From NCBI GenBank assembly GCA_030704615.1, contig CM060731.1, positions 124,001 through 188,000 on the forward strand: DNA of 64,000 bases. Direction: 5' to 3'. The DNA comes from Takakia lepidozioides (taxonomy: Eukaryota; Plantae; Bryophyta). Shown here in pieces: positions 18,950 through 61,020 of this stretch. The stretch's first letter is position 1; each line of letters opens with the position of its first letter. The notes below the pieces were generated by a model, which saw nothing but the letters and a program-made list of their open reading frames with translations, searched no databases and was not told the origin of the DNA. The translations under genes and the position numbers were made by a program.

Positions 18950-19226
18950 TTGATACTTTCACCTTTCCTCATACTCTTCTCTGGCCACAGAGTCACCGTG
19001 TTTTTCACGTGCGCTAGTGTGGTCTGGGGGGGGGCATCGTCTACATTTGGGCAAGGCAATGTAACACTTGAAGCATGATCTCGTGGACTTTCACCTTGTA
19101 CCACCCGGATCGAATGTCCTTGCAGTGGAACTTGTCAACCCCGGCTATTCCCACCACTTCTGCCTTGGCGGCGGCTGTCTTTGACCGCTTGTCATGGGGG
19201 TTCAGGAGAAACACAGGATCTGATAT
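18950..19226 (-). pseudogene. En/Spm TnpA-type C-terminal domain exon (Transposase_23-like), frameshifted
   Basis: After a CTGCAG acceptor: VFLLNPHDKRSKTAAAKAEVVGIAGVDKFHCKDIRSGWYKVKVHEIM...PNVDDAPPQTTLAHVKNTVTLWPEK, which fits the V-A-x-G...H...W-Y-K-V...P...T...W-P pattern. Confidence 0.6.
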
Positions 19227-20084
19227 CTGCAGACACCAACATCAGGGTCCACTCAGCAACAAACATAGCAATGACAGATGAAAGTCAAGCGCAGCTGGGC
19301 ATGGAAACGATCTTGGTTGCCACAATACTGAATCAGCAGCCAATTCACGGTGTACCAACGTACCTTGAAGCCAAGCTCGTCGCTAAGGGTGGCAACTGAG
19401 GAAAGCTGCCCACGTGTCTTCAACTGCAGCAGCAAAAAGAGGTTTAGTCAGACGGATAGAATAACATGAACTCTGGTGGTTGCAATGGTATAAACACACC
19501 TCCACGGAGCAAGCTAACAAACATCCTGCTCAGACCCTAGCACTACAACTTCCTGGCAAAAATAACCCTACTAAAACCAGCCAGGCAAAGCAAGGAGCCA
19601 TGAATGCCATGCCTGGGGAACCACGTCCTGCTCGATGATGGTGCCGGGGACAACCACTCCTCTTGCTCACCTGCAATGATAACATTGCAACGCTTCAGGA
19701 AGTGTATCCATAAAGGAAACCAACCAAGTAAGTTTGCGGAGAGGGCTGGGAACAACCATACCTTGGGCGCTGCCTTCCTCATGCCGGGGGGGGAATCCGG
19801 AATGCTGCCGCCGTAGCACTATGGTCGTAGGCGCAGGACCCACCTTCTTCACATTCGACCCCACTGCCACTCCCTGTACATGTGGTCCCTGCAAAACATA
19901 TAGTGCCAGCCTTGCGTGAGAGGGCATCCGGGGGGAACAAAACAAACATGGACTTTGGCTTCGATGTCATGTTGCAAATAGTAAGGTTAGTTTCACCTGC
20001 ATGGGCACAGAAGTACTTCCCCCAACAACCCCATCCTCTCCCACATTCAAGCTGCCAGTCGGGGTCAGCTTCCTTGTGCTTGTG

Positions 20085-20490
20085 AAGACACGCACATCCT
20101 TGGGGCAAAACAAATCTTGGCAGTAGGGCCAGACTGTTTCTAAAAGGTAGTCTGAATCGGGCCCCTCACTGACATTGCCAGTGACATCAAACGACAATGG
20201 ATGGACCATGTTCAAAGGGGAGTTCCCCCTCCCCTTGTGTGGTGAATCATCCACTAGGAGGGTGTTGGATTCGTTAAATCCAGAAAATTCCGACCACACC
20301 CTCGACAGTCTCTTCTGTAAGTTCTGTACGGCAGGCCCTTTTGTGGGGTGTGGCTCTGTCAAGGGGTCACACTCCTCTTGTGACCACACAAAGAGGGGAG
20401 AACCCTTGACCCCCTGCATGACCACTTTGAAGATGTCTGCAACATTCCCCTTGGAAGCACAGGACCATATCCCAACGTAGAAATACCCTG
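20085..20490 (-). pseudogene. FCP1/NIF (HAD-family CTD-phosphatase-like) domain, 5'-truncated, inside the CACTA
   Basis: FYVGIWSCAS...PLFVWSQEECD...KRLSRVWSEFSGFNESNTLLVDDSPHKGRGNSPLNMVHPLSF...DSDYLL is the NIF signature. The N-terminal DxDxT motif is missing because of the junction at ~20490. Confidence 0.8.
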
Positions 20491-20512
20491 GGAGGACATT
20501 TGGCATTTCAGA

Positions 20513-22429
20513 ACCTCTTGCAGCGGTACCTCCTGGACCCCATGCATTGTAAGAAGAACTTCTGCGAGAACATTCTGAAGACTATCTTTGGGGAGAAGGA
20601 TATGATAAACGTACGAAAGGACATGGAGATTGAAGGGATACGGTCACATCTGTGGCTAACGCCTGATCCAAATAGACCAGGCAAAGTGCTCATGCCAGCA
20701 GCATCATACGTCCTGACCAAATCAGAGCAAGAGGATTTTTTGAAGACATTGGGAGCCATGAAAGTGCCAACCGGATTCTCGGGTGCTTTCCAAAAGCATG
20801 CCATAAACAAGAAATGGTCGGGGATGAAGTCACATGATCTACACGTGATGATGCAACAGATTTTGCCAGTGTGCATTCGGGGTACAATGGCGCCAGGTCC
20901 TCGAACAGCCATAATGCGTGTAAGTCGAGTGTTTAGGAAGATTTGTGCGAAGGTTGTGGGATCCGAGGGACATTACATCGTTGCATGAGGATGTGGCTAT
21001 GACCCTATGTTTGCTGGAGAAAGAATTCCCTCCATCATTCTTTGACGTCATGATGCACTTGCTAGTGCATCTTGTAGAGGAGTTGCATGTGTGTGGGCCC
21101 GTAGCCAGCCGGTGGATGTACCCCATGGAGAGGTACATGAAGGATCTAAAGGGGTATGTACGCAACATGGCACGGCCAGAGGGGAGTATGGCGGAGGGCT
21201 ACATCCGTGACGAAGCCCTGGGCTTCATGACAGAGTATATGTCTTCATTTGATGCATACAACGACGGGTGTGGGACGAGAACGAGGAAGAAGGAGTTGTA
21301 GGCGAGGTCCTAGAAGGTGGTGGAACAAAGCGTGTCATGAGCCCGCGCCTTCGGGATGTGGCACATGATTATGTGCTGAACAACACAACAACCATGACAC
21401 CATGGAGACAGTGGGTGCCAACTTACATCCCTCATGTGTTATTCTTAATGGTCTTTGTATGCTGGAATTACATATATATTGTCACAAGTCATTCCGGCCA
21501 CTATGGGAGTGGGATCGTGTACTAACAGGGTGCTTCAGACGACTATAGAGGGTGTTTCGTAGATCTTGGTTGTTGCTTGCAAGTGATTATGAAGTAGGCT
21601 GCATCACTACAGTGTGCTTGAAAGGACACACACTCTGCATGTGGCATGCATGTACAGCACGGTGTTGGTCAGGGGGACTGAGTTGCAGCTTCTATTTGGT
21701 TTCTGCCAGAAAGTACGCAGCGGAGAAGGTCTGCCTGAAAACGGAACGGAGTGCATTTGCAAAAGCATGGCGGAGGGGCGGTCGTAGGCGCAGATCCCCG
21801 GTGGAGTACCCCACAACAATGGAGGAGCTGCAGCCCTTTACAGTGTGGGTCAGATCTGCAATTGCAGTGTACGCATCAGAGAACGAGGACCCAGATGAGG
21901 GCATGGTGAGTCTGTCATTCCCCCCAGGGCTGATTGCCACTTCGTACCGGTCAATGAAAGCATATGGCAATCACTATAGAGTGGATGATGCCAACACCAG
22001 CCTCCTGGTGACTTATGACAGCGGAGTGGCATCATTTTTGAACAAGAGAGTAGGAGCTGTGCACGAGATCAGAATCCAATTTCATGCCATGTGCAATATG
22101 TAGGAGTGATCAAAGAGATCCTTAAACTAGACTATGGTCTTGTGAAGCCAATTCCATTCCGTTGTTCTTGGGTAAAAGCCAATATGGTAGGAGAGAATGC
22201 CACCATGAAACGGGATGAGTACGGGTTCTTCCTTGCTGATTTCAGAAAAATGCTACCACAAGATGAAGAGCCATTCATCTTCCCATCGCAAGTTGAGCAA
22301 GTTTTCTTTTCAGATGACACCCATGCGCCGGGATGGAAGGTGGTTCTTCACAAGGACCCCTGGGCCAAACGAGTCGTGGCCGACGTCCATGATCTGGACC
22401 TAGGGAGAATGCCGACCACGAGGGTCTGA
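20513..22429 (+). pseudogene. C-terminal half of CACTA TnpD transposase (DUF4218/DUF4216-type regions), frameshifted, with introns
   Basis: LLDPMHCKKNFCENIL, GMKSHDLHVMMQQILPV, LEKEFPPSFFDVMMHLLVHLVEE..CGPVASRWMYPMERYMKDLKGYVRNMARPEGSMAEGY, YVGVIKEILKLDY..FRCSWV, EPFIFPSQVEQVFFSDD..GWKVV. Confidence 0.92.
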
Positions 22430-23418
22430 GGGAACCACGAAATCTACCAGATACGGCCGAACCAGTCTCTTTGGAAGGAGCAGTTACCTTTAATGAGGAA
22501 GACATTCCAGGGTTGGTAATTACCACAAGGCAAATTGCAGATGTGGGTAGTGAAGGGGAAGATTATTTGGATATAGATAGTGAGCCCAGCTGAATCTCAG
22601 TGTCCAATAAGCCAGCAGCTCATAGACGAGAGCTATGCTAAGGACTCTTACTGTCCTTAGAACCCATTTTGTACAGTCCTGCAAGCGCGCAAGGGCGAGA
22701 CAGTTAATAGTATCGATAATGTCCCGGTATGTGGTCCGTACTGTCTTGTGAACAAACCTTTTTTTGTTTTGCCAATATTGTTTCTGACATGTGAGGAGAG
22801 GATCGTCTTCATGTACGGGAAGTAGACGTGAATGTGTGCATGCATTTTCTGGCCCAGCTGCATGCTTTCCAGGAACAAAGACCAGTGGAATGGGGGGTGT
22901 CTCCAAAGGAGCAGGACCGAACGACACCTTTTTGTGCTTCCCTTGCTTTCCTTCTCACCGTTGTTGCATTCTCCCACCTGCCCAATAGCAGCACTCTCGA
23001 AGCAATAGCATGACATATGTTGCAACATGGTCTTCTTCACCAGCGAATGAGCTTTTTTGCTACATGTATTGCCACGTCCACATTAACGTTGATCCCTGCA
23101 AGCACTTGGCAAGACACCCTAGAGCCGCAAATCCAGCAACCACCACAAACACATCTAACTGATTGTAGTGACACGGGAATAGCTCACTTGTACAGGAAGT
23201 GAACCTCCAGCCAAATGAATGGCTCTGCCCCTTGTAGCACAAGTGCGATGCAAAAACAAGGTGAGTACAAAATGAAGAAGCACTTACGAGGTCCCCATCC
23301 CTCGGATGGGCTCCCACTTGTGCTCTGGAACTGTGCAGGCCTGACTAGCACCAAATTGCATGAATCCTAAGCCTGAATGTCAAATGCAGGTTTATGTCGC
23401 GATGCAGCACGCCATCAT

Positions 23419-33273: not shown

Positions 33274-35902
33274 GCATACACTACTACGGTTTGTAATGAA
33301 GAGCTAGAATGCAAGTCCTTGACTTCTATGCTTCTACTCAAGCAAAAATATGGTCTCTAGGTGGTCATAAGAGACATCTTCTTGCTCTCTTCCACCCCAA
33401 TGTGCAACCAAGAGTGGTCCAACTCAACTTGCAAGTCATTGTCCACCAAATCAATCCCCCTTCTAGTCCTTGGGATTTGATTGCAAATTACCATATCTCC
33501 ATTGCCGAGCAATCATGCATTTGTCTCCTCATCACTTGACAATTGCTCCAAATCAACACAAATTATCTCAATGTGTAGGAGCAATGCTTGTCACTTACAA
33601 TAATGCTCCCAAGCAATCCGCCTTGGATCCCGCTCTCACGCCATATGCCTCATTTGGGGTCTTGCACCAATCCATCATCCATGTGCTCCCCGTGGTCATT
33701 TGAATGCATGTTCCATGACCTCTTGGCCTATGTGTTGCTCTCCTTCATTATAACATGAATCAACACCTCTCCACTTCACACACAAATGGATCTCAAAGGC
33801 CTTCATCTCTTGCTAGTTCAAGAGCTCCCATTCTCAAACTTGAACTTACAAACTCAAGCAAGCATGCTCCACACATGCACCACTTGTTTGGTCAACTATC
33901 CACCACAAAGCTCGCACTACCAAGAGCATGAATAGCCAAGTATTGTCTCCCCCTCTTGTCACATTACATAGTTAGGGTGAAGCTATGCATACATTGAATG
34001 ATGATTTCCCTTCAAGGATTTCCCACCACATGTTCTCCAAGCCCTTCCAATGGCATCCTAAGCTTGGCTCCACACCACCATGATTGGAAGATTTCTTCAC
34101 ATGCTCCCTTTCAAAACCTCTTGAGCTTCTTAGTGCTCTCCAAGTGCTTGCCCTTGTTGTCTTCAAGCCCAAGCATATATAGCTCATTGGCTTCTCTTCC
34201 ATAACATCCACACTTTGAACTTGCTTAACCCTAGCTTGATAGTGAAATGAGCACTAACAAGTCTTTAGTCACTCTCCACAAGCCATGGTGCACACCATCG
34301 ACTCCATAATGCATACAAAGGATTCTCAAACCCTAGAATCCATGCTTCCACACACACAAGACTTCCTCCTTACAATCCTTGCAAAATCTTGTGACTCAAG
34401 AGCTTTCTTCTCAAGCTCTCCAACTCCTTGGTGCATGCAATACTCGAGCACTTTTCCTTGCAACCCCTTGCAAGCCTTGTGATACAAGAGCTAAATTCTC
34501 CTAGCTCTCAACCTCTTTAAAATACAAGTGCAAAACTAATCCTTACACTCCACACTCACAAGCATAATGTGATCTTCTTGTAGTGATAAGAGATGAGAAA
34601 TGAGAGAAGTAGAAGACAATGAAAGCTCTCAAAGCATGAAGCAATCACATGAAGAACAAGCCCTAGTCCTTCCAAGTGAAATCCACTCTATCACATAAAC
34701 TAAGTCAAGCCAAGGGCACCTTTGTTAAAGGAATCCACCCTACAAAGCCCTCAACACACTCCCTCTCAATACCTAGAGCTATGGAGGTGAGAGAAGCTCA
34801 TGGAGGCTCAACTACAAGAAGATGAGCATCCTCAACACTCATAATGGGAAAACCTATCTCCATGTCTCAAGTGAGGCTCGACACCTCACTTGGCATGTGA
34901 GACCAAATGAAGTCCCAACACACAAAATATAAATATAAATATAAATATCTAAAATGTCCTAGTTAACTAGAAGTAGGTAATTCTAGATAACCATGACTAA
35001 AACCATGACATTCTATTATCAAGAATCTAGGTGCAAACTTAGCACTCTTCTACGAGCATCAGGGATGCCTCGGCGTGAGCGCAGCAGTGCTCACGCCACG
35101 TCACCTTGAGCGAACGCCACGTCACCGGGCTCACTCCACGTCATCGAGCTTAAACGCCACGTCAACACGCGCCAAGTAAGAAGCAGGGTGTATTTCCGCG
35201 GAAGAGCACCCTCAACCGCGGAAACAAGTTGGACGAAATAATAAAAGGACGTGGTCATCCCCACCTGAAAACAACAGTTGAACGCAAAATGGATGAATGT
35301 AGAATGGATGAGAAATATATGGATGTGTGGGAACAATGCAAGCAAATGGATGAATGTGGGATGGATGTTGAATAATGGAAAACATTCTTGAATGGAGGAT
35401 GCATGAATACACAATAGATGAATGCACAATGGATATGACATGAGTGTGAGGGGTTTGTGGAATGGATTCATGAAGATTGACATTTGAATCCGAGTAGATT
35501 GTTTGATACATTTTCTTTTCTGCCGGAACAACTGCAATGAGGCAAGGGAATTCAATCATTTCCGAATAGGATATAAATAGAACATTAAAAATGCGAAGTT
35601 CAGTCTGACTCAGAGTCAGTATAATGTATCCCCGCGTCCTCTGCATCCAAGTCCAAGAATTTAAGAACTCCGGATCTACGATGGCTACTCCTGCGATTGG
35701 GCAATAAGAAGTCAGGGGATAGAGCATCGGCCATTTGAAGTGTCATTGCTTCGGCATAGACAAGAAGCACAAAAGTAGAAAGGGGACTGTAAAAAACAGT
35801 CTCGGCACAAATGGGGGTTTCTCCTGAAGATCCATCGTTGCCGTTCCTGCAAGCATGATAAAAGTTAATACTGCAAACTGGAATGACAATTCCATGGCCG
35901 AC

Positions 35903-37830
35903 TTACTCACATGAAAAGTCGTTGTCGATCTGCTTATCCTCGGTATCCTCATCATTTCTGATTTGAATTTGTTCAGTCTGTGTGCCAAATGTAGAGCCAG
36001 ACACAAGAGGGAGGAGGACACTCTTGAATAGTTCGGTGTCGCCCTCCATGCCAAAAAGGCTTCTCCCGCCAACCTTGCAAGCACGGTAAGTCGCACCTGC
36101 CAAGACAAAAAGCCTCAAGAAGGTTGTAGAGGATGCAAAATCGGATGCAAACTGGAAGACCTTGAAAATGGGAACAATATTGAACCAACGAACCTGTGGA
36201 TAGTGTGAGGTCGACCACCCTTGCAGAATGGTGGCTGCATGACTCCAAGAGTGTCTGCATGAACGCTAGGGTTCTCTCCCTTGCACCTCTCCATGGAAAC
36301 CCATCTGGTCTTTTGGTTGTCTGACTGGAGTGCATGAAATTGTAGAGCATGTCATCCACATGCGGTTCATATGGGGGGTTGATGAAACACCCCTGGTCGG
36401 AAATTCAAAGCTGCGAACGGAGGATGGTGTTTTGGAGGTGCGAATCCTCCTTAGGCAGATTGCCTCAAACATCCTTGTCTGGCAAAGATGCAAGGTAGGG
36501 GTGAGACATGGAAATATGAAAGGAATTATGGCGCAGGAAGGAACAGAACATGGACTGCAAATGAAAACTACAATGGAATGTATTTGTGATGATCGGTGCC
36601 GATCATCACAGATGGTGGTAGAGCAAGCCAGCAGAAACAACTGAAAAGACATTGGGAAACAATTCAGAGGAGGGCGGTGCCATACCAGCTGTCCAGGGCA
36701 ACCACCTTTCAGAAGGTACAGGATGTTCACACAATTCCATGTCCTCAGAATTTCAAACCCAGACGACTTCAGGTATGATGCCAGTCCCCTACGACTATCC
36801 TTGTCACATGACTGGGAGAGCAAAAGCGTTCCTGCATCTGAAAGGAAATTATTGCAGAACCCGAATACCCAACTCCAGTAGTTCTCATCGAATCTATTCC
36901 AGGATGGAGTCTTTCCCTTTGGAGGAACGTCGGGGACAGGTCGGCCGTCTGGGATGTCAAGGATGACCATGTCAGCGGCAAAGGTTTTTTGAACACCGCA
37001 TACGAATGAGGGACCAGTGCTCACCTGCAGCATACATGTACAATTTAAATACAAACAAAAATGAGGGTCCCAACAGAAACCAACATCTACATTGGCATTG
37101 ACAATTTCGAAAGTCCCATGTGAAGAGAAAGATTCTTACCATATTAAGAAATGAAATCATGTTATCCCAAGTCGGTGATGGCACCCCCGAGTAACCTTTT
37201 CTCCGAGTCTCCATCATCGCCATCCATCCCTCATTCACAATCTTGATCTGCTCTGCCAAGTCCGCACGGGAATGGTGTGGCTTGGCATCGAAAACGCATT
37301 CAATAGTGCGGGTGTACCTCCCAGCTGTCTCATCTTTCTCCTTGTCCTTGTCCTTGTCCTTCTCTTTCTCCTTTTCCTTCTCTTTCTTGTTCCCTTTCTC
37401 CTTCCCCTTCTCCTTCTCCTTGGACTTCTCTTTCTCCTTAGTCTTCCCAGGTGACTTGGCTACTAACTCCGGAGCCTTTGGATCTTTCACCTTGCGACCC
37501 CCCTTCCTGCCTTTCTGTGGAGTTATCTGCGCGTCTGGCTCATTGGCGGCCAATGAAGCTATGTTCCTCTGGTACTCTTCGTCGTTCAAAGGTGCCAGCG
37601 TCTCCGCATGGTTGTTCATATACTTATATGCTGCTCTTGAAATGTCGTGTGCTCTGGAGGGCAGTCGAGGTACCATCCACAGTCCCTGAAGTGGGCAGGA
37701 CTCCAATCCCTGAAGATACCAGCTGTGTACATGGTGGGATCGTTGGTAGGGTCGGACCACATGTCCAGGTAATCTGGGATTCCACTCAGGTGTTTTCCTT
37801 CCATCAGCACATATTTAGTGTACTTGCGGA
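35903..37830 (-). pseudogene. Intron-containing beta-class amino-(N6-adenine/N4-cytosine) DNA methyltransferase-like gene. Exons ~37830-37140, 37024-36686, 36478-36194, 36096-35903; two frameshifts
   Basis: Three GT-AG introns join in correct phase. Motif order is beta-class: ADMVILDIPDG (motif IV position), WNRFDENYWSWVFGFCNNFLSDAGTLLL, PWRGARERTLAFMQTLLESCSHHSARVVDLTLSTG|ATYRACKVGGRSLFGMEGDTELF (motifs X-I-II). A K/E-rich linker lies upstream. Confidence 0.72.
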
Positions 37831-39369
37831 GGCTCAAACAAATCCCCCAAAACAAGATATCAAAAAGCAGAAGAAAATGATGATCGGTGGCGATCATCAC
37901 TTTCACATGAGAGAGAATGCAACATGGGTTGGCAAATCCTTATGATTATGTAGACTGCACAACTGGGAAATGTGATGGTCGGCACCGACCATCACTTCAT
38001 TCATCATAAACAAACTGCCTATGATAACAGAGGCAGGATTAAGAATGGAAACATGGACATGATCTGCAGTATTCATTTGTTTGACTGGAGAATATCAGAG
38101 TAGTGGAAGTGATGATCGGTACCGACCATCACCAAACTGCTGTGTAGCAAAAAAGAAATATTAAGCTTTTCTCAATGAGACATGACAAAATTTCAAAGAA
38201 TGTGATGGATAGGCTTAAGGTATTGCACCTGTACACAACACGCATCATCTATGGTGGACCAAAAAGCACGTCCTGCCGTTGTAAGAGAAGTATCGTTTTA
38301 AAATATATAGATTTGGTTCTATAACACTGATGTATTCTTGTTCACTCTATTTTGTCCTGTGCTTAACTTTTTGATCTAAGCCCTAGTGAAAGTTAGGCTC
38401 CAATGAATATTATGACTTGAGTTTTTTTGTTCAAGTATCTTATATGGTATTACTTTGTACACAATTTACAGAATACAAAAATATATTATATTCTATTAGA
38501 AATAAAAAGATTGATGTTGAAAATGATATAAAATTGAAATGGCATTAGAACTACATGATATTTTATTATTTTATAACTATTTCAAAGATACAAGTATAGT
38601 TAAGAACATACTCTAATGCCCTATGGTAATGGGCTTATTTAGATAATATTTTATTTCATGGGGTTGGATAGTTGAGCTTTGCTTCATTATTGAGTAGTAT
38701 AATTTTAATGGGATGATTATTTTTTTATAGTCTTTTTTTATGCACCGTCACTAATGGGGATGAACACAATTCTAATCCATGCTCACATCACCATAGGAGG
38801 GCAAAAAAACAGATTATATGATACCATTAGAGAAATTTGTGGGTTTTGAGGCCCAAACAAGTAGTGTATTTAAGCACGATAAGTGCAACTCCAGTACAAA
38901 TTAAAATACAAATAGGCACATTCAGGAAGGGAGTGGGCGTGGGAGATGTGCAAACTGGATGCTATGAATGCCACAAATTTCATCCGCCAAATTTCATCCT
39001 GAACTTTATCAATGAATGGAATTACCAGGTGTCCTGCGATCATTTGATTATCTGACAACCAAGCATTTTCCTCGATCTTCGCGGAGTGTTACACTTGGGT
39101 TCTTTTCGGCGTGCTAGTTTCTCGGCTCCTCGAGTCTCTTGTTTCTTGGTTTAGGGTTTCGAGGTTTAGTGTACTTGAGATACATGCACCCACTGTGAAA
39201 TAGTATGAGTTCTACACTATAGAGTCTAGAGGTTCTTGGCCAAGCTGACTTTCGGAGACACAGGGGCTGTGTGGATCATATCTTCACTCTAAGCTAGTGT
39301 ATTCAGGGAAGGGAATAAGACGGGAAACCCGCCTTCGTCTTTTTCTTGGATGTCTTGGAGTTGAGCAGG

Positions 39370-39510
39370 AACTCAGAGCGGGAAGCCTACCTTTGGACGG
39401 AAAACAGATGCAGAGAGGAAACGGGATTGCAAATGTGTGTTATATGCGCATCCTGAAGATAATACTCACTTTTTGATTCGTTGTCCTGGGTACGCTCACC
39501 ATAGAGACTT
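39370..39510 (+). mobile_element. Short LINE fragment (CCHC region), same family as 6400-6877
   Basis: AACTCAGAGCGGGAAGCCTACCTTTGGACGGAAAACAGATGCAGAGAGGAAA...CCTGAAGATAATACTCACTTTTTGATTCGTTGTCCT. Two small reverse copies also lie at ~41690-41810. Confidence 0.7.
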
Positions 39511-39519
39511 ACTGACTGT

Positions 39520-41470
39520 TCTCTCTCTTATGTTACAGGTGCCTAATTCCAGCTCAAGACAGGTGAAATTTATCTACTACAAGGTGGAGTTTTTTGTAGA
39601 GTTTCTTTAGACTGGCCTCAGCGAATTCGGGAAAAAAACCCATCATTGTTGTGTTCATCGTTAGGGTGGAATACCAGTCAGCAACAAGGTCTCCATTTCT
39701 CCACTTTCTGCATTCTTGGTATGTACTCGTTCTTGATAGGGCTTTGCATTGGTAGGTGGGCTCTGCTGCCCTGTAGTGACTAACTATGAGCTGGATTTTT
39801 TCAGGTCACCGTTTTCGCACTACAGTAGTCTATGTCCCCTTGTGTGGCCTGATAAAAGTTTTTATGCTAGAGCTAAAGTATGACGCCTCCCGAAGGGAGC
39901 GTAACTTATGGTGTCACTTCACCACACGGGCTACTGCTAGAGCTATATTAACAACAAAGTGAGTCCAAGGAACATGTAGACCCTACTCTTGGCTTCAACT
40001 ACTTGTGCTGAAAAGAAACAGACAGGAATGACCGTTGAAGCTTATGAAAAGTAATCATGTGTATTGCCTATGTGCAGTTTGAGAAGTGGAGTTGGATCCA
40101 GAGGTATGGCTATTTGTGTTTATGCAACTACCGAGGGTTAAGTTGGCATAGGGAAGTGAAGGGGAGGTTTTTGGGGTTGGAAATGGACTTGTTTGTAACG
40201 TGGACAACTTCTATGGGTCCTACAATTTTCTGTCTTGTTGGTGCAATTGTAAGATTGCACACACCAACTGCAGCTTTTCAATTTGGCCTATTATCTTGAA
40301 GCTGATCCAGTGAGGTGGGACCTACTAGGAGAGGCACAGTCAGTTCATTGAGTTGTTTGCCAATAACTGATTCTGAGCAGGGTTTAGGATTTCAGATAAG
40401 GTTAAAGAGAAGTAGAAGGGCATATATCACCATGCTTGAACTTTTTGAACTGTGTCATTCCATTCTTTAGTAGACTCCTCACTGTTAGGCCTGAATCACA
40501 TGTAAGGTTGTAGGGTTTTTTTCTCACATTGTCTCTTATGGTTGCAGGTGCCTAATTCCAGCTAGCATTGTTAGGGTGGATTACCAGTTAGCAACAAGGG
40601 CTCTTTCTGCATTCTTGGTATGTACTCGTTCTTGATAGGGCTTTGCATTGGTAGGTGGGCTCTGCTGCCCTGTAGTGACTAATTATGAGCTGGATTTTTT
40701 CAGGTCACCGTTTTCGCACTACAGTAGTCTATGTCCCCTTGTGTGGCCTGATAAAAGCTTTTATGGTAGAGCTAAAACAACAAAGTGAGTCCAAGAAACA
40801 TGTAGACCCTGCTCTTGGCTTCAACTACTTGTGCTGGAAAGAAACAGACATGAATGACAGTTGAAGCTGATGAAAAGTTATCACGTGTGTTGACTATATG
40901 CATTTTGAAGATTTCCTGAACAAGCGGTGGAGTTGGATCCAGAGGTATGGCTCCCTCTGATTGGACATCTTGTAGCAAAGCGAGTGGTTGGGCTCTTGAC
41001 TGTGATGTTGTGTCTGCACTTGCTGAGTCTACCTCTGTCCACCTCATATTTGTGTTTATGCAAGTACTGAGGGTTAAGTTAGCATAGGGAACTGATGGGG
41101 AGGTTTTTGGGGTTGGAAATGAATTTGTTTGTAACATGGACAACTTTTTGGGTCCTACAAATTTCTGTCTTGTTGGTGCAATTGTAAGACCACACACACC
41201 AACTGCAGCTTTTCAAATTTGGCTTTTATTATCTCAAGCTGATCCAGTTAGGTGGGACCTACTAGGAGTTGAGGCACAGTCAATTCAGTGAGTTGTTTGC
41301 CAATGATTGGTTCTCCGCATGGTTTTGGATTTCAAATAAGGGTAAAGAGAAGTTGAAGGGCCTATATCGACATGCTTGAATTTTTTGAACTGTGTCATGT
41401 TCCATTCTGCAGAAGACCCCTCACTGTTAGGCCTGCAAGTTCATTACATGAAATAGTGGATCACATGTAA
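39520..41470 (+). repeat. Tandem duplication of a ~0.9-1.0 kb non-coding unit rich in splice-like sites
   Basis: CAGGTGCCTAATTCCAGCT (39536, 40546), CTTTGCATTGGTAGGTGGGCTCTGCTGCCCTGTAGTGACT (39742, 40641), CACTGTTAGGCCTG (40480, 41422). The same unit recurs at 53520-55270. Confidence 0.88.
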
Positions 41471-41886
41471 GTGAAATAGGGAATCACCTGTTCAGGAGTT
41501 GATTTATTGCCTGAAGAGGTTTTTTTAACCTTTGGCTGTTCAGGGTGAGTTTTGCACCCCCCCCTAAAGCTCCCGACGAGATGAATAGGTCCGACAGTGG
41601 GGTAAGCTGCAATGTATGACCAATAGCAGATATATCCTAAGTTAATCGCCTCTATATCTTGTATGTAGTACATCAGGCAATCACAATTTCCTCTTCCTCT
41701 CTGCATCTGCTTACTAATCAAAGGTAGGCTTCCCGTCTTGAGTTGTCTGTAGTTACAATCTCCTCTTCCCCTCTGCATCTGTTTAATGTTCTAGGGTAGG
41801 CTTCCTGTCTTACTTAGTGCTCTGTCTGCAGTGATTGCAGGGTATCCACGCCACCATTCGAGATAGAAAAAATTGATCATGCAAAC

Positions 41887-42717
41887 ATGGAGGATGGAGA
41901 GTTGTTTGGAACTCCTCTGAGCAGTCCCAGTAGGTTGATGGTTGATGGTTCTTATGTTGACACGGTAGACTTAGTAGGAGCTGGTTCACCTCCGATTGTT
42001 GATCGTCACGTCGATCCAGCTTCTCTCCTTAGTATCCACGCTGGTTTTACCCACCCAAGCCAATCAGACCACACATTTAGAGGTCAGACAACGTCCTTCT
42101 TACGAGTAAACATTTGGACTACCACCGATTCTGTCGGCCCTGGACTCTATCCCACAACACTTACTTCAACAGTTGCCTCTACGTCATTTGTTGCAGGCCC
42201 CACAACAGATAACCCAGACAATAATGACACAGAGACACGGCATGTATTTGATTTGAGTCCTATATTTGGCATTGCTGGTGGACCTCTTTCAAGGGCACGA
42301 ATCCTCGACCTCATTGTGGGTTTTTCCCCTATTCAAATTCACAGAAACAGGTACCTTGGTGGGACAATTAGAGGGGATCGATTTCGCCTCAGAGGGTTGG
42401 TAGCGGTTGAGGATTTTCCCTTGTTTGGAAATGATGTATGGGTGAGGCCTGGTGGACACAACATATGGAGTCCACTCTTTGAGTGGAGGGAAGTGCCTAA
42501 TATTCAAGATTATGATGTGGTTATTACTGAAAGAAATGAATTGTCTTGCACAGTTGTGACAATTTGGCAAACTCAGATAGATGATGGATGGGAAGAAAGG
42601 GCTACTGCTATTTATGGTTCTTCCTGGGAACTGATGGACTTGGAAGTGCCCGACACTAATTCTGGAATTGGTTTTTCCCGACAATATCCACGGTTGTGGA
42701 TTTGGCCAAATTGGTGA
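41887..42717 (+). CDS. Uninterrupted 276-aa ORF of unknown function
   Basis: ATG in AAACATGG context just after a TTGCAG acceptor (41840). The C-terminal half looks globular and is W-rich. No family recognised. Confidence 0.45.
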   Translation: MEDGELFGTPLSSPSRLMVDGSYVDTVDLVGAGSPPIVDRHVDPASLLSIHAGFTHPSQSDHTFRGQTTSFLRVNIWTTTDSVGPGLYPTTLTSTVASTSFVAGPTTDNPDNNDTETRHVFDLSPIFGIAGGPLSRARILDLIVGFSPIQIHRNRYLGGTIRGDRFRLRGLVAVEDFPLFGNDVWVRPGGHNIWSPLFEWREVPNIQDYDVVITERNELSCTVVTIWQTQIDDGWEERATAIYGSSWELMDLEVPDTNSGIGFSRQYPRLWIWPNW

Positions 42718-42993
42718 CAAGATGTTTCAGGTCAGTTGAGCAGCGCCATTGTCTGCTATGTATTTTGAATGAATTTAGAAGCACGGTGGACCATCCCAAT
42801 TTGCAAGGAATTTGAATGCTTGGCCTTGTGTCTTTACAATTTAATCAGCCTCTGGTGATCAAAGCCATCTTGTGCTTTGGGGCTCATAATCTGACTTTAT
42901 TTCAGTTTGTGCAGAACTCATGCAGTATAGGAGACATTCAAGCTATTCCAGAGGACAATGTTGGGCAGTAGTTAGGAATGGCTAACAAGCGAA

Positions 42994-43773
42994 ATGTGGA
43001 GAGGGTATAAAAGTAGTGCTGCAAGAAGAGCGAAGGATGTTCTTTTAGAGCATGAGCCAGCTACACCAAATCATATAGGCGTTCGGAAGGAAAAACCACG
43101 TTTGCTAAAGGCAAAATGGAGGGAAGGTAACAGGTTAGCAGAAGGAGCTGCTGAAAGAGTTGCTGCTACAACTACTACAGGTCCCCGCAGCACTGAATGG
43201 GGCAGGAAGGTTGCAAAGAAGCTTGTGAAGCAATTTGTGCAATTGACAGGTTCAGAAGGAAATGATTTTCAAAAAGACGCTCTAAGTCACATGACTTCAT
43301 GCCGAGTGTTGAGGAAGAGCTTACCTCCTAATATTCTAACATGTAAGGATGCTGTTGCCACTCAAGAGTATTTTGAGGCTGTTAGAGGTGGGTTGGCTGT
43401 AGTGAAAAGACTGTCTACAAAAGACAAGCTTGCAGCAAAACATGCAGTGTTGAGTATGGGTGTGTCAAGTGCCACCTCAAACATGCGAGCTATTGCTCGA
43501 CTGGTAGGTGTCCATCATCGGAATGTGGCAGCTGCAATTGTAAGACGCAAACTTGTTGATGCTCATGGGGGTGCTTTATGGGCATTGACTGGTAGGAAGC
43601 AGCGTTGGGATGTTGTCCCTTGTGAGACAAGAACTACAGTAATAGCAATGTGGACGGAGCAAAGCAGGGTTTCCCCAAATAAGAAAGATGTATGCAGGCG
43701 TCGAATATCCAGAAACGTTTATGAGACACATGCAACTCACTTCCTCACTGAGACTCGGGTAATAACGCCTTAA
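42994..43773 (+). pseudogene. N-terminal part of a Sola-like DNA transposase (HTH + RKxR..D / SRVSPNKKD region); catalytic core not found
   Basis: MRAIARLVGVHHRNV (HTH-like) and RKQRWDVVPCETRTTVIAMWTEQSRVSPNKKDVCRRRI...HATHFLTE resemble the pre-catalytic region of Sola-type transposases. Ends at a GT donor followed by microsatellites. Confidence 0.55.
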
Positions 43774-43809
43774 CAACTTTCATATGGTTGATTTTTCATT
43801 TAAACTGAT

Positions 43810-43957
43810 TGAGAGAGAGAGATATATATACACATATATATATATATATACTCATAAGATGTTGTTTGCCGTAGCCTTGCGGCCATTGACCTTGCGCCCA
43901 GTTTGAGCTGAACACAAAGGGACAGAACCTACCTCTGTCAGGGGCTGACGTCGGTAG

Positions 43958-43989
<32 letters not shown>
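43810..43989 (-). mobile_element. ~105-bp LINE 3' tip (43851-43958) between (GA)n/(TA)n and (GA)n microsatellites
   Basis: The reverse complement matches 6770-6877 and 48250-48350 and ends GGCTACGGCAAACAACATCTTATGAGTA. Confidence 0.8.
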
Positions 43990-43991
<2 letters not shown>

Positions 43992-45774
43992 ATTTGATGA
44001 TTGCGTTTTGTTGAAGGATCGACAGATAGTGAGGAACATTGTGGTACAAAGTTTGTGATTTATTAAATGTGTAGCCCTTTCAATGATTTCTTGTTAAGAT
44101 GTGTGACTTTGCTGTATGCAGGATATTTCACCACACATTCCTCGAGGGATGGTTATTGTGGGCACTTTTATAAGTTCTTGCTACACCAACCCATTCTCAG
44201 GTCTTTGATTTCTAGTTAAGATGTGTGACTTATGCAGATGTATCACCACACGTACCTTGAGGGAAGGGATGTCATGCAAGTCACTCAGAACACTCACAGA
44301 GCTAAGTAGACAATCTGTTCAGTACATGATATTGTCCACGGACAATTCAGTATTAGAGATTGTCAAAAGCTGTGGGCACTTTGATAAGTTCTTGCTACAC
44401 CAACCCATTCTCAGGTCTTTGAATACACAATGTTGATGTAATTATTGGTCAGTCATGCAATCTATGTGAATATATGACAATTGCATATTGTTGTTGAAGG
44501 ATGGATATTGGTGGGGAACATGTTGGCACAAGGTTTGCATTTCCAACTTCATTTGATTTGGTGTCTTTTAGATATAGATGGTGGGCCCTATTATGGTACA
44601 AGTGTTTGTCTATGGCAGCTATTTGAAGATTTGGTATGCAGGAGATGGAGATCAGTTTCTATGGATGTTGGTTACAGATCATTGTAGCCAACATTTGTCT
44701 AATCTGACCTTGCATCTTCTCCATTGGAATCCTTAGACATCAGACTTACAGAGTTTGAACTTCAAATTGTTTGAGGTTTCTGAAGTGGATGTGGTACTAG
44801 TTCTGACAAATTCGGATATGATGTGAAGTACGTCGTGGCACTGATTTGTGGCTATGTCAGACTAGTTATCAAAGAGCTCTGTCAGTACTGATGCCACGGG
44901 GCGGGGATATTAATCGTACAAGTCAAACTTATGGTGTTCCGATGAACTGGTTAGACAATTTGAAGTATTGAGTACCTTTCAAAGACCACTCGTTACTGCA
45001 AGTACTTGCAAGCAATTGGAATTAAATGTGAGGGGTTCTGAATCATGTCGTCCTTGGTCTTTGTAGTGGTGAATTTGGGGGCTGCTTGCTGTGTGCTTCA
45101 GATAGCACTGGTCAAACAGCTCCAAACCCTTACTAATACTGATTATATTATGTATATATGGTAAGTGTGCATAGTCAAAAGTGTAGTTGACAAAGTTCTT
45201 AGAATGCTCCTTAAAGTATGTGGATGTATGTTTAGTGCTTCTTATTTACCACCCATGTACTCACAACACTCAAGCACTTCCGTGAAAGTGCACGTGGGTT
45301 CAAATGAGTGCTAAGTAGTGGTTTGGATTACAAGGGGATTTAATGGGAATTAACAAGCATTTGCTGCATCTGTGTTTTCTGAATGTATAGTTCAGATACA
45401 TCTACCATATCCTCATTCCGGGGAAGTATCTGAGCGATGATCCTCGATAATACATCTAGTCTTTAACCATCCACTCATCCATTGTTCATGCATTGCGAAA
45501 CGTATGTTTATCTATCAACCATCTCGCATTCAACCATTCATGAATTATTCATCCATCATTCATCCAACATTCATTCAACATTCATCCATCATTCATCCAA
45601 GTACGCATGATATGTACACTCATTCCCGCGGAAATATGTCTCTCGGGGCTTCCTCATCCGCGATTGTAGGCCCATGCACCCTATTACGTGAGCATCTTTT
45701 CGCTCACAGATTGGCATCTTCCCGCTCGCGCATCTTTCCGCTCACGGGAGCCGCTCACGGACTAGCAATCCCCT

Positions 45775-47170
45775 AAGATGGCCAAGAAGGACATGGGATC
45801 GACCATCCTGAAGCCAATCAAGGCCTATGTTCTCCCCCCATGGAAGACAATGCGATGCAGAAATAGGGTCTCTAATCTTGGAGAGAACCCCCTTGGATTT
45901 ATTCCAATTAATTCTGAGGCCTGATGCATCACAGAAGGAGGAAATAGCATCTAGTGTACGTTGAACGTTGGAGAAGCTGTTGTTGTCAACCAGAAGAGAA
46001 GTATCATCCATATATAAGAAGGATTTAATGTTGTAATCAGATATGCAGGGATGCGGGACTTTGAGACCTATGATGTCAGAGTTCTTATTGAGGAGATGGG
46101 TAAGACCATCCGCTGCAATTAGAAACAGAAAAGGAGATAAATGACATCCTTGACGAACAGAGCGGAAAATTGGAAAAGCACTGGATGATGTGACCATTTT
46201 CGATGACCTTGTTGGAGGCAGATTGAAGGAGGATCCGAATCCAGCTAAGGAAGTTTCCATGAATACCACATTTTTGTATGGCACCCAGAAGATAGTCCCA
46301 TTCAATGTTGTCGAAAGCTTTCTCGAAGTCAAGCATTAGAAGAGCTAAAGGCTGGTTCGAAAATGGGCAGTATTAAGAGCCTCACTGGCTAGAAGAATGC
46401 TATCGAGAATCATGCGATCTTTCATAAAGCCAGTTTGCTCAGGACTGATCATCTTGCATAGCAACGGCTGAAGTCTGGAGGCCAAGGCTTTCGCTATAAT
46501 CTTATAGACAACATTTAGCAAAGTGATTGGCCTATAATTAGCCAAGGAGTCTCTATCCCCTTTTTTGAAGATCAAAGTGATCACTCCCTGGGATAATTGC
46601 GATGGCATAATGCCCTTGATGAGGATGTCGTTAGTTAAGTTAACAAAATCCTCACCACAAACAGGCCAAATTGCTTTGAAAAGCTCAACAGGCAGCCCAT
46701 CTAATCCAGGGGACTTTAAAAAAGCAAGAGATGAGAGAGCTTCCCCAAGCTCTATTTCATAAAATGGGGCAGAGAGCTTTTCCAGATCAGCAGGCAGAAT
46801 GACCGAGGGGAAAGCAGACAGTCCACTTCCTATCTGGATAAGATCACATCCTCAGAGGAGGTTCTCCTGCTGAACAAAGATGAGAAGTGGGAAGCAGCTA
46901 AGGAAGACAACTTTTTAGGACGAGAAATAGGAAGAACCGACTCATTCTTCAGAGAGACAATAGTGGTTGCTGCCTGACGTTGCCTAGCCTTAAAGAAGAA
47001 ATATCTAGACATTTTTTCTCCCTTAAGAGAGCAGCTGATACCCGCTTTACATCTCAAGTTATCATCTTTTATCTTGAGCAGCTCAGCTAAGTTTCTTTTG
47101 GCCAAGAAATAAGAATCCCAAGTAGCAGGGGAGGCCCAATCCTTCTCAATGACTTGCTGACAGTGAGACA
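45775..47170 (-). pseudogene. L1-type LINE ORF2 reverse transcriptase, decayed
   Basis: KSPGLDGLPVE, GVITLIFKKGDRDSLANYRPITLLNVVYKIIAKALASRL, EQTGFMKDR, LDFEKAFDNIEW, VRQGCHLSPFLF, LYMDD, SGLRINWNKS. Stops and frameshifts present. Confidence 0.92.
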
Positions 47171-47210
47171 AACACTTAAAGAAATCTGTGAAGCTCTTTT
47201 ACATCCGCAG

Positions 47211-47559: not shown

Positions 47560-48350
47560 CCTCTCCACTGCTCTTCAATGTTTTCATTAATGAGCTCCTT
47601 GGAGATGTGGAAAGCGAGGGATTTGGGTTTAAGATGGGTGACAGCTCTTATGTTTGTGAATGACTTTGTGGGACTAGGGGATACCCCCATCCAATCTTCA
47701 GGAGTTGATTGAGTGTGCAAAGAGGTACTTTGACATGTGGAGGCTAGAAGCCAATGTCAGTAAATGTGCAGTGGTGGCCTTCAATGATCGTGGGGAGGGA
47801 GGAGGGAGTAATGTTCGAACAAAATGAAGTTAGGCTTATGACTTCCCTGCACTTGTTTCTAGTTTGTGACACGGGTGAGGACCTTAAGGATGATCTGAAG
47901 GGCCTACCTACCGTCGGCACTAGACTGAAAACTAAACTCAGGTTGGGGAGTTTGCCTTTGAACAATAAACAGATGCAGAGAGGAAAGGGAGATAGGCAAT
48001 GCCCACAGTGTGGGCGGCCTGAAGACAATATCCCTGTTCTGATACAATGTCCCCGGGATTCCCATCAGAGAGTGGCCCTCTTCAGGACCCACAAGAACAT
48101 AGTCCCTGCACCTATGTTCACCAGCTTTCAAAATCTGGAGGCTGAGCCTAAAGCCCTGGCCTGTTTGGGTCTAATCGCTGGGCATCAATGTGAAGGGCTT
48201 TCTAGAGGAAATCTGGAAAACCTAAACCAATTGTTTATACCAAGTATGGGAGTGAGCCCCTCACAAAGGTAGTGTCTGTTCCCTCTTGTTCCGCCCAAAC
48301 TGGGCACGGAGTCTATGCACTAGGCTACAGCAAACAATGTCTCATGAGTA
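47560..48350 (+). mobile_element. Internally deleted LINE 3' portion (RT domains 4-7 remnant + CCHC + 3' end)
   Basis: SPLLFNVFINELLGDVESEGFG and LEANVSKCAVVAF as in 52465-53194, then KLRLGSLPLNNKQMQRGKGDRQCPQCGRPEDNIPVLIQCP. Ends GGCTACAGCAAACAATGTCTCATGAGTA. Confidence 0.85.
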
Positions 48351-55393: not shown

Positions 55394-58300
55394 CACTAGA
55401 AGAAAAACGCGGAATAACCACTGGCCCTTTTAACCACTCTTGTCTTTTATCACTCTATAAATCACTCCAAGTAATGGTAACCACTGGTCAGTGGTTAATT
55501 CCGATAAAATACCACTGTGGCATCATATGGAGTGGTTGGAAGTGGTTTCAACCACTGAGTAACCCACGTGTAATATTTAATTTTATATTTATTATTCGAC
55601 ATTTGGTCAAATATTTATATTAATAATGATAATATCCGACATGGATGGGTACAGTGATAAATTATGAGTGGTTAAAGACACCTCAGTGATGGGAAGTGGT
55701 TGAAACCACTTTCTATTCCACATGTAATAAATATTTTTTTTAGATTTTTATCATTTCAAAATATATTATTCCACGTGGACGAGGATAGTATGCGTAGATC
55801 ATGAGTGGTTAAAGACCCCCCCAGTGATTGGTACCACTTGCACAGTGGTGGAATGTGAGTGGTTAAGACCCTTTTGTAACTGGAACCACTCTTTAAGTGG
55901 GCACTTGTGAGTGGTTACATACACGTGAGTGATTGGTACCACTTCTGTAGTGGGTTGTGAGTGGTTGAAGACACCTCAGTGATGGGGGTGATTGAAACCA
56001 CTTGCTACTCCACGTCTAATAATTCAATTTTTATTTAAGATTTATCATTTCAAAATATATTTTAATTATGAACTATATTATTCCACGTGGACGGGGACAG
56101 TATACGTAGATCTGGAGTGGTTAAAGGCCCCCATTGATGGGTACCACTTTGAGAGTGGTGTAGAGTGAGTCGTTACAGACCATTTAGTAACTGGAACCAC
56201 TCGACCAGTGGTTACGCGCGAGTGATTACATACACACCAGTGATTGGTATTACTTCTGTGGTGATACATGAAAAACTTTAGTGGTTTGTGTGTTGATGGA
56301 AAACACAAAATCCATCCATCTATCGCTACATTCATCCATCCAGTCATGAGTGAGGGGACTTAGCGTTTTTTTTGTCTTCCCTGCCACTGTGGCATCTGTT
56401 TGTTTTCTTTGTGTTGTAGTGTGAATGCAGGGGAGTGACATTGAAATTTTTGTTGTTACTCACTGAGATTCTGCATTTCTACAAAGGAAGGGCCCTGGTA
56501 CCAATGTGAAAATAGGTTGAGTTGTCCTTGCAATTTATTCCATACATGTTTCTAGGTTAAATCATGGGAACGATGGGGAACTCTTGGCCAGGATGAAAAT
56601 GCTCAAGTACTTGCGATTTATTTCATCCACCAGATGGACGGATTTCATCCCTGATTTTACAGATTACTCTATGAGCGCGATGAAAGTCCGCGGCCTGGAT
56701 GAAAGTCGATCAAACTCATCATCTACCTATTTTTATCCCGACGATGAACGGACTTCATCCCTGCAAGAAGTATGATGGCGGGGAAGCCCTACGGGTGTTG
56801 TGGGAAGTAGAATGGTGTGGTGTGTGCAACAGGGAGCTTGGCGCGCGTGCATTGAGGTATATCGATTGAGGAGCATGGTGTGGCATGAGGTGCGGCTGAC
56901 AGAGGAGGAGCAATGCTTGGAAGGGTGTGCAGCTGCGATTACAGGGAAGCGGTGCCGTCTTTTGATGATCTATTTCTGAAAGATCAACTCACGAGGGAAG
57001 GACTTGCTTTGAAGAAAGGGAGTGCTGCAGGACGATTCATTAAGGGCAAAGGAGGCTTGATGCCATGTGCTACTGACAGAAGTGATGGAGGCTTAGTCAA
57101 TCAGTTTAGTCAAAGGTCGGGGCTTCTTCTTCTTCTTCTTCTTTCACTTAGGAATAGTTGTTGTGGAATTTTGGTAGAGACACTCTCAATGGAAATAAGA
57201 GAGACAAAAAAAGGATTTTGGAAAATGGAATGGGGACTCTGGACTTCAATCTCCAGGAGATTGTGGAGATGAATGGATCTGATGCATATGTCTGTGGGAG
57301 TGGTGATTGAGGGCAAATGTAGTTCACCCACAATGACATAATGGTTGCTATTTGTTTTGTTTTTGTTCCTTTGGCTACAACATTATGAATCTGAACCACA
57401 ATGCGGCTCTGGGATTTTGATGGTTAGATGTACATGCAATCCGGTATAGTTGATGTGAGCACTAGTGAGGGTTAGCTATGATTTCTTTGTAAACAGAAAG
57501 AGGAAGGTGTGGATGGCTGGATGCAAGGAGTAGGGCACATTGAATCATAATGCTTGCACACTGTAAGGCAATTAGATTTCAAGAGGGCAGTGTACCTACT
57601 ATGGGGGTAGGCTGTAGCTTTTCTGAAAGAAGACATCAGGTGGCATGCATTTGTTCCCTACTGCTTGTATCAATAAGCTTAGAAACATTCATGGACTGAG
57701 ATCTGCAATTAGTGGGGCATAAGGGTCTTTCAAAAAGTTAAAATGCAGTTTTAAGGAGGAGTCAAAAGTGGGGGCACTGTGATATCATGCCCTCTTCATG
57801 CAAAAGGAAAGAGAAGAGAAATCTGAAATAGAGAAGCTAGGGTTTTGCATTTTGATTTAAGTAGATGTGAATGATGTCAAAATACCATGCATCAGTGTAC
57901 AATCCATGGGCAGGATATGAAGGGGTAGCAATGTCATGCCAAAGGGGGTCTGTTTCTTAGATAGTTGTAGTATTAATAAAGAAGGAAAATAAGAGCTCAT
58001 GTGTAGAAACTAGGGCCTTTGCATTCTGGTTTACAGTAGAGTAAGTGGCACACATATTTCTGCATCACTTACCTAGTCCAAGTATGGGCCAGTGGGGTAT
58101 CTCTGATATGTTTACACTGTGGATAGGATCAATTTCTGTATAAGGATCAGAATGTACACCCTGTGATTTTCCAATGATGACATTTGTAGGGAAGAAGAAC
58201 CCTGGCATATATGATGATCTGTTCACTAAAGAGACCCAATAACAATTTAGATAACCTCAGCCCTGTCCATGTCTTCTCTTCCGCTGCGGCATGGATAAGG

Positions 58301-59534: not shown

Positions 59535-61020
59535 TGTCGCGCACCTCACTTCGGTACGCTCCCCTTCAAGTCATAGTTACTCGCTTTGATGTGCGCACCT
59601 AACTCCCAACCTAGCCGCCGGGCCAACTCGGAGCTTCGGCTGCTCACCGGAACATAACGGTCTCCCTTTACTCTTCCAAAAGATCCTCCACCAATTTGGG
59701 CATAGTGGAAATTCCCTTTGGTAGATGGCAGTCCGGAATAGCTCCCCACTCCTTGGTCGCTTTCCAGCTCGCTCGCTTACTCACTAGTTTTTGGTCACCA
59801 ACGGGTTTGCACCGTTCTCGGGGTTAATACTCCCTATATATACTTCTGTGACTGTCCGCGGGGGTTTCACAAACAACCCTGCCATTTTATGGCGAACCAC
59901 CACGAAGACCCTCGACTCCCGGTGAAGAGTCGCGGTGAGTCTTGACCATCCACCACGGCCCCATTGGACCGTGATGAGTCCCAAGACTCCCCAGGACTCC
60001 CACCACAAGGTCTCCGCCCCATGATGAGTCCTATGCCACCCCCACTAAATCCCGCTAAGCTACCACCACCCCTTGTGGAGCCACCCCCATCGCAACCCGG
60101 TGTGCGGGGCTCCACCTAGTGATCGCCTCTGCCTCCTTGAGTGCCTTGGGCACTCAAGGGTGCTTCAGCTCCCCGTACCTATCGTTGCCACTGCCCCCAC
60201 CACAGGGGCAGCCCCAAGTTGTGGCATCCCACATCAAGGAGTTTGTTTCCATACCATGGCGTCCAATGGCAAAGATCCAAACCCCCACTTGACTCAACTC
60301 TCCACTAGCTAGTTCAGCCGACTTCCTCCAAGTCCCGGCCAAGGGTGGGCTTCTCAAGCTCCTCCCAGTGCACTCTTCTTGGCCCACTTCAAGGCCAAGG
60401 AACGATCCTCCCCGAGGATCGAATTGCCTTACTGCAACAATATTGCTTGCGACCGCTCATGATGCCGCTTTTGGCATCACCTTTAGCAAGGGTTCACCTT
60501 GAACCCCTTTTTGACTAGGAAGGTAACCTTGAACCAACCGTGCGCCCCAATCACTACAATTGGGTCCGCCTTGGAATGCTGGCCTGAGGTACGGGAACAC
60601 GCCAAAGCCGCACTACGACTTCATCCCGAGGCTACACGATTATAGTACGTGAACGGAAGCACGTAGCTTCCGCGTTAGCCTGGACTACAAGGCAACCCCC
60701 TCGGTAGCGCAGTTATAGTGCGCGCACGCGCCAAGTGCGCACTAGCACGTGAACTCCCAAAGAAGGCGCAAGTTTCCTTGCCCCTTGGATAAGAGTCACC
60801 CGATTTCGGCACTACGCAAACACACGATTAATCCAATTTACCTCTCCCACTTTTGTAAGCTAGCATGCATTCTACACACTAGCCAACCATACCATGCATC
60901 ACCATTCCAAACAAAATAGGACGCACATCATTTGGAAACCATTTCATTTATAACAAAATTTGTACAATACAAGTTTTTGCAATTGGATTCCTGAGCTAGC
61001 TAAGCCGGGCTAAGCATGCA
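59535..61020 (-). mobile_element. 3' LTR of a chromovirus Ty3/gypsy element
   Basis: TGCATGCTTAGCC...GTGCGCGACA on the minus strand, PPT at 61021-61040. Same family as 909-2481, with an internal deletion near 60215. Confidence 0.93.

Follow-up and report, generated by a model that had tools for sequence, protein, structure and literature searches.

A probable decayed DNA transposon carrying a methyltransferase-like accessory gene in the bryophyte Takakia lepidozioides

A stretch of 64,000 nucleotides of the Takakia lepidozioides genome (GenBank assembly GCA_030704615.1, contig CM060731.1, positions 124,001 to 188,000 of the forward strand), hereafter the window, contains at positions 35061-45774 what is likely to be a decayed member of a multicopy family of cut-and-paste DNA transposons. 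The copy is probably non-autonomous, and its accessory gene has the fold of a beta-class methyltransferase with an altered catalytic loop. The gene is spliced, lies on the minus strand at 35603-37831 and follows the motif order of beta-class amino-methyltransferases. Two long open reading frames (ORFs) diverge from it on the plus strand, mirrored motif arrays lie at the two ends, and 24-nt palindromes found nowhere else in the window occur within and just upstream of the gene. With these features the window provides a land-plant member of a kind of element recently described in algae.

A spliced methyltransferase-like gene with a conserved, altered loop

The gene is read from four minus-strand exons. 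The upstream exon (37140-37831, extending at least to 37831) contains a conserved GWYLDCP box, a Lys/Glu-rich low-complexity linker and the N-terminal lead-in of the methyltransferase domain. Intron 1 (37025-37139; GT..AG, phase 0) separates it from the exon with the motif IV to VIII equivalents (36686-37024; ADMVILDIPDGRPVP..PSWN..FLSDAGTLLL..W.CVN), which is followed by intron 2 (36479-36685; GT..AG, phase 0). The third exon (36194-36478) starts with TRMFEAICLRR.. and continues through a variable region and a PWRGARE box to the motif I equivalent VVDLTLSTG. Beyond intron 3 (36097-36193; GT..AG, phase 1), the last exon (35603-36096) runs from the motif I tail to the motif II/III equivalents (ATYRAC..GRSLFGMEGD) and an acidic C-terminal tail, with the natural stop at 35605-35603. 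A first-pass annotation of this DNA, made from the sequence alone, had already described a four-exon gene with in-phase introns and the beta-class order; both are retained here, but it had begun the third exon about 75 coding nt too late (the exon starts at 36478) and had overlooked that the last exon runs on beyond a TAA to 35603. An NPPY string at 36369-36380 was considered as the catalytic motif and rejected; it falls between motif VIII and the PWRG box, where the sequence is variable, and the relatives do not conserve it.

The model is supported by comparison with relatives, for which the exons were searched singly. In tblastn searches the long relatives cover 37831-35639 colinearly and match no other place in the window, and residues 622-745 of one of them (P0058) are colinear with 36097-35639. 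The position of intron 3 is conserved, as another relative (P0007) keeps the equivalent stretch in frame. One contig skips intron 2 (joint 36475>36686) and retains intron 3; it comes from a sequencing run whose RNA label is a guess. This contig and P0007 together suggest transcription and splicing of related copies. The gene family is highly multicopy, since 700 contigs of a same-species DNA run match a 2.6-kb part of the gene with an identity of at least 80%.

The window copy itself cannot make the methyltransferase-like protein. It carries two frameshifts, at about 37625, where all other genomic copies aligned there have an additional C after 37625, and at about 36403, where most other genomic copies have one extra base; an in-frame TAA at 35905-35903 further interrupts the last exon. 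Upstream of 37831, searches for ParB or linker exons returned noise only, and the 5' exons of the relatives, including the ParB-like one, are undetectable in the window. That the copy is frameshifted had been recognized in the first-pass annotation, which overlooked the missing 5' part.

The affinity of the encoded domain is indicated by both homology and modelled fold. Among 1.84 billion representative sequences, the motif IV exon has 84 relatives (best E value 2.9e-21), most of which are single-exon fragments. Two are long: P0058, a 758-amino-acid hypothetical protein of Ceratodon purpureus, and P0067, a 596-amino-acid uninterrupted ORF on a 3-kb contig, which is about 31% identical to the window exon. 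Both match the Pfam family N6_N4_Mtase (PF01555) below its gathering cut-off of 26.7 bits (P0067, E 4e-4, 20.8 bits; P0058, E 0.015, 15.7 bits), and no family member tested reaches that cut-off. When a family profile was compared with PDB sequences, CcrM ranked first (E 0.087) with an alignment over the full length (28-228 against 30-229). This alignment places D-[I/L]-P-[D/E] over DPPY and D-x-x-A-x-T-G over DPFFGVGT, and it confirms the permuted order with motif IV first and motif I last; the window exons fall in the same columns. Residues 290-575 of P0067, modelled from a 64-sequence alignment, gave a predicted local distance difference test score (pLDDT) of 78 and a predicted template-modelling score (pTM) of 0.80. 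The best 43 matches of this model in a Foldseek search of the PDB (43 chains from about 11 entries) were all DNA methyltransferases, with E values from 3e-12 to 5e-8, and comprised beta-class N6A/N4C enzymes, type III Mod-like proteins and putative DNA methylases. CcrM led the matches (E 3.2e-12), which also included M.BceJIV, M1.HpyAVI, M.RsrI, M.MboIIA, M.PvuII and the bdelloid N4CMT, so that the beta-class relationship read from the motifs in the first-pass annotation is borne out by the model. Matches of the domain in phages were weak (E 0.1), and 63 of 63 records fell on genes annotated as DNA methylase. As the window gene is homologous to P0067, the fold assignment extends to it, and by modelled fold the minus-strand gene is a relative of the bacterial beta-class N6A/N4C methyltransferases.

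The catalytic loop departs from that of the known enzymes. Where motif IV canonically reads (D/N/S)-P-P-(Y/F/W), the window reads D-I-P-D-G (DIPDGRPVP), a replacement that the first-pass annotation had noted in this copy and that we find throughout the family. Among 64 relatives the successive positions are occupied by D (53), an aliphatic residue, P (58), E or D (59; E in 38 and D in 21) and G or N (60; G in 44 and N in 16), followed by L-P-V-P, and none of the 64 has DPPY, NPPY or SPPY there. The window agrees with this D-x-P-[E/D]-[G/N]-LPVP pattern, and the alignment identifies the loop as a conserved family feature rather than a product of decay. The motif I loop is likewise altered, reading D-x-x-A-x-T-G in the family (DLTLSTG in the window) against F-x-G-x-G, with T-G retained. 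The acidic residue after strand 2 is also retained, as ALE in the family and GME in the window.

Element-specific palindromes and the layout of related loci

A 24-nt palindrome, GTGATGATCGGTRCCGATCATCAC, which was overlooked in the first-pass annotation, occurs at 36586, 37877, 37972 and 38109 (four sites against 0 expected), with no others in the 64 kb. The copy at 36586-36609, GTGATGATCGGTGCCGATCATCAC, lies inside intron 2, and the remaining three form an array at 37877-38132 just upstream of the gene. Of six related loci checked, from mosses or metagenomes, five (L015-L019) have a 24-nt palindrome array of their own, with 5 to 17 copies; none is present in L001, the third Ceratodon copy. 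In L015, L016, L017 and L019 the array has the transposase-like ORF on one side and the ParB/methyltransferase gene on the other; in L018 a ParB/methyltransferase match was not found. The palindrome sequences differ among elements, whereas the 24-nt length and a 10+4+10 layout are constant. Contigs of other copies join palindrome to palindrome (for example 36608>37969), which indicates that array length varies and that deletions occur between palindromes, and such a deletion could be the cause of the 5' exon loss in the window copy. Elsewhere in the window, a different 23-nt palindrome of the CTTGAGTGCC.AAGGCACTCAAG type occurs at 44-66, 1860-1882 and 60136-60158, far from the element, and a cluster of three 22-24-nt palindromes with an AACCAC/GTGGTT core at 55477-55713 may be a subterminal or binding-site array of another element.

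The related loci place the methyltransferase-like gene in a recurrent arrangement. About 16 kb are common to three Ceratodon loci. One strand of this segment carries a 714-amino-acid ORF; the other carries, in divergent orientation, an exon with the motif GNHRVTAW and then the methyltransferase-like gene. The 714-amino-acid ORF has 65 homologues, all unnamed, and no Pfam domain. The same type of ORF is again divergently linked to methyltransferase or ParB-like exons on two ENA contigs, and a divergent partner ORF is present in five relative loci. Extension of ENA contig_2062 yielded an interrupted cargo gene, and terminal repeats were not found there. A metagenome scan with the methyltransferase family returned 11 loci of 1.3-3.7 kb each, too short to reveal linkage. 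At L001 the GNHRVTAW exon (8226-9239) lies outside the annotated gene of P0058 (M758_9G084500, 10001-14794), and since the NCBI gene model begins downstream of this exon, the annotated P0058 is probably 5'-truncated. Two of the loci contain a second ORF of about 480-500 amino acids without a Pfam domain (L018 12311-13810 and L019 12321-13766), on the same strand after the transposase-like ORF; this second ORF may represent another gene conserved in the moss-type element. Beyond the end of the moss element at L001, unrelated neighbours include a kinase-like ORF (17518-19182) and an ORF of 1148 amino acids (19932-23378) that appears hAT-like by eye.

In the proteins of this family the beta-class fold occupies the C-terminal half, and intact relatives have additional N-terminal exons, one of them putatively ParB-like. 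The protein of an intact relative may recognize the 24-bp palindromes of its own element, and it would then either deposit an amino-methyl mark nearby or serve as an S-adenosylmethionine (SAM)- and DNA-binding scaffold, with the outcome that the element's own DNA is marked or shielded. The window copy would at most retain palindromes and subterminal repeats on which proteins of intact copies could act in trans.

Element boundaries, plus-strand reading frames and competing interpretations

The two ends of the element are related. The left terminal and subterminal region (35061-35470, plus strand) includes the GGGATGCC..GTGAGCG terminus, GTGAGCG/GCTCAC motifs, a TATTTCCGCGG box and three TGGATGAATG-type repeats, and the right subterminal array (45472-45774, minus strand) includes seven TGGATGAATG-type repeats, a TATTTCCGCGG box, CGCTCAC motifs and a terminal ..AATCCCC stretch. 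Read inward, the ends at about 35061 and about 45774 have in common a GGGAT..GTGAGCG terminal stretch, repeated GTGAGCG/GCTCAC and the TATTTCCGCGG box. With at most one mismatch, TGGATGAATG occurs on the plus strand at 35290, 35347 and 35415 (span to 35424) and seven times on the minus strand at 45472-45599; the whole window has 19 matches against 8.5 expected, grouped by strand at the two element ends. The mirrored arrays of the first-pass annotation are thereby confirmed.

The flanks are of different origin. On the left is a different repeat of about 150 bp (34858-35008), 91% identical to 17448-17592, which stops at 35008, 52 bp before the proposed left terminus; the true left terminus therefore lies between 35009 and 35061. 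On the right, minus-strand reverse-transcriptase ORFs like those of long interspersed nuclear elements (45742-47171) abut the element, and as they run straight into the right terminus, the element was inserted into the retroelement or truncates it. A second, non-autonomous element is probably nested within the first at 39370-41744; its inverted arms, 51 nt long and 82% complementary, enclose a tandem duplication of about 935 bp. An arm related to this insertion is found at 47935-48052, about 6 kb downstream and outside the element, and a further related position is 41766-41805.

The plus strand holds two ORFs in the same frame that match nothing in the searches made. ORF1 (41887-42714) encodes 276 amino acids from its ATG in an open frame of 299 codons (41818-42714), and ORF2 (42994-43770) encodes 259 amino acids with a basic N-terminus and the sequence SRVSPNKKD in an open frame of 265 codons (42976-43770). 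Both open frames are too long for chance. Neither has a Pfam match, DUF7869 included, a homologue among 5.8 billion proteins within the length range covered by that search, or any match in the metagenome scan, the Atlas or PDB sequences. Nine ORF fragments downstream of ORF2 also lack a Pfam match, and no catalytic domain was found there. ORF1 and ORF2 sit where the relatives have their transposase gene, and they are unclassified.

The first-pass annotation had called the SRVSPNKKD frame a Sola-like transposase. What survives of this is the presence of long plus-strand frames; no search supports a transposase identity, and the Sola assignment is unsupported because ORF1, ORF2 and the downstream fragments match nothing in searches made without a curated Sola profile. 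An autonomous-type Sola element, in which ORF1 and ORF2 would encode the N-terminal portion of a Sola (DDD) transposase with the methyltransferase-like gene as cargo, is in our estimation unlikely. It would account for two long frames that diverge from the cargo gene as the transposase of the relatives does, and the sole published pairing of such a cargo is with Sola1 (PMC12477816). Besides the blank searches, it has against it the target site: a 4-bp AWWT duplication is a hallmark of Sola1 (PMC3845634, citing Bao et al., 2009), and a scan of 75 x 75 boundary pairs near both ends found none at any plausible element boundary. The same scan found no duplication of 8-11 bp, a range that covers the 9-11 bp typical of Mutator-like elements, and no convincing target-site duplication of any other kind, so that the duplication which the first-pass annotation had hoped to define was not obtained. 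This lack, the insertion in mid-element, the cargo gene without its 5' part and the palindrome-to-palindrome joints of other copies would all fit a composite, in which each end is left from a different, part-deleted insertion of one family, or the right half (41806-45774) forms a unit apart from the methyltransferase-bearing left half. We regard a composite as quite improbable, given that the same four motif types are mirrored at both ends, that the layout with the cargo gene at one end and divergent ORFs at the other is that of the relatives, and that, the 39370-41744 insert aside, no internal inverted repeats mark off a second unit within the element.

A separate question concerns what the domain does in intact relatives. 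An active 6mA/4mC (N6-methyladenine/N4-methylcytosine) writer, whose altered loop changes specificity only, is possible but somewhat doubtful. The intact fold, the retained acidic residue and T-G, and a loop that is clearly conserved and not decaying speak for activity; on the other side, 59 of 64 relatives have Glu or Asp in place of the aromatic residue that stacks on a flipped base, the first proline is aliphatic, motif I deviates from FxGxG and no family member comes up to the Pfam cut-off. In a bolder and improbable extension, the methyltransferase-like gene would travel with its private 24-bp palindromes as a portable 'self-recognition' cassette and would have passed among unrelated transposon lineages, namely Sola1 in a brown alga, a lineage with a Pfam-less transposase of about 700 amino acids in mosses and the ORF1/ORF2 lineage here. 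In this last lineage it may act without ParB, and its conserved D-x-P-[E/D]-G loop would make it either an enzyme of non-canonical activity or purely a reader.

Several observations weigh against our preferred interpretation of 35061-45774 as a single decayed transposon of this family. No transposase was identified in the window copy, its exact termini could not be fixed, and because no target-site duplication was found, its unity rests on the similarity of the ends and the gene layout. A scan of every exon and ORF of the element gave no Pfam hits for its exons, only low-complexity noise, and the fold comes from a model of the homologue P0067, at about 31% identity. Neither tblastn searches with the 65 homologues of the moss partner ORF nor a profile comparison with six-frame fragments found that ORF in the window, and the window element may therefore belong to another transposon lineage than the moss ones. 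Searches of Pfam, of PDB sequences and, by tblastn, of phages gave no support for a ParB identity of the exon lying upstream in the relatives; a model from four sequences reached a pLDDT of 36 and is unusable, and the GNHR motif was recognized by eye only. Lastly, runs X9 and X10 are labelled as RNA by guess.

Relation to known transposon-borne and bacterial methyltransferases

Literature searches found no land-plant report of such transposon-borne genes. The family was until now predicted only in algae, to which the window adds a member from a land plant. Two testable regularities emerge from the window and the related loci, the strictly conserved replacement of the DPPY loop and the element-specific palindromes of a constant 24 nt. 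Element-encoded self-recognition combined with possible chemical marking would represent a counter-silencing or self-regulation strategy unlike known plant cases. The value of this inert copy is that of a data point for the family and of a record of its decay mode, for example deletions between palindromes.

At the level of the domain, the family shares the fold and the permuted order IV...X-I-II with CcrM (6pbd), M.BceJIV, M1.HpyAVI, M.RsrI, M.MboIIA, M.PvuII and the bdelloid N4CMT (8s9m). It differs from these beta-class enzymes in sequence (13-17% identity), in the replacement of DPPY/SPPY and the altered motif I, and in that the domain is part of a multi-exon eukaryotic gene (about 1000 amino acids) inside a transposon. 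Fusions of ParB and helix-turn-helix modules to Dam-type methyltransferases have been described in chlorophytes and chytrids (Iyer et al., 2016, PMC4738411). This 'chlorophyte-type Dam' likewise joins a ParB-type DNA-binding module to a prokaryote-derived amino-methyltransferase in a eukaryote; unlike the family described here, it belongs to Group-2 (Dam/EcoKI-TaqI-like) and does not have the beta-class fold.

Among transposons, the Plavaka elements of the red alga Bostrychia, with the accessory genes PAG2 and PAG3, have inverted-repeat arrays adjoining ParB-domain accessory genes, and self-binding and self-modification have been proposed for them (bioRxiv 10.1101/2025.02.11.637652). They resemble the present family in their transposon-borne ParB-domain and N6A-methylase-like accessory functions and in the tandem inverted-repeat arrays beside the ParB gene. 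Unlike the window gene, the Bostrychia functions reside in separate genes of Plavaka/KDZ-type elements, with ParB fused to a 2-oxoglutarate (2OG) oxygenase in one and a SET domain attached to the methylase in the other. The pairing of a methyltransferase gene with a transposase, which the first-pass annotation had taken to be uncharacterized, is in fact on record: Sola1-1_Ec32 of Ectocarpus (21.5 kb), published in 2025, encodes a 1104-amino-acid accessory protein with ParB-like and N4C/N6A methyltransferase parts opposite its Sola1 transposase (PMC12477816). The window copy differs from it in lacking the ParB-like part, in partner ORFs that are not recognizably Sola and in its host, a land plant and not a brown alga. 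Common to both are a spliced gene with a prokaryote-type N6_N4_Mtase-class domain, its transcription in the direction opposite to the other large coding unit, its location within a large inverted-repeat DNA transposon (a probable one in the window) and the proposal that the element's own DNA is bound and modified.

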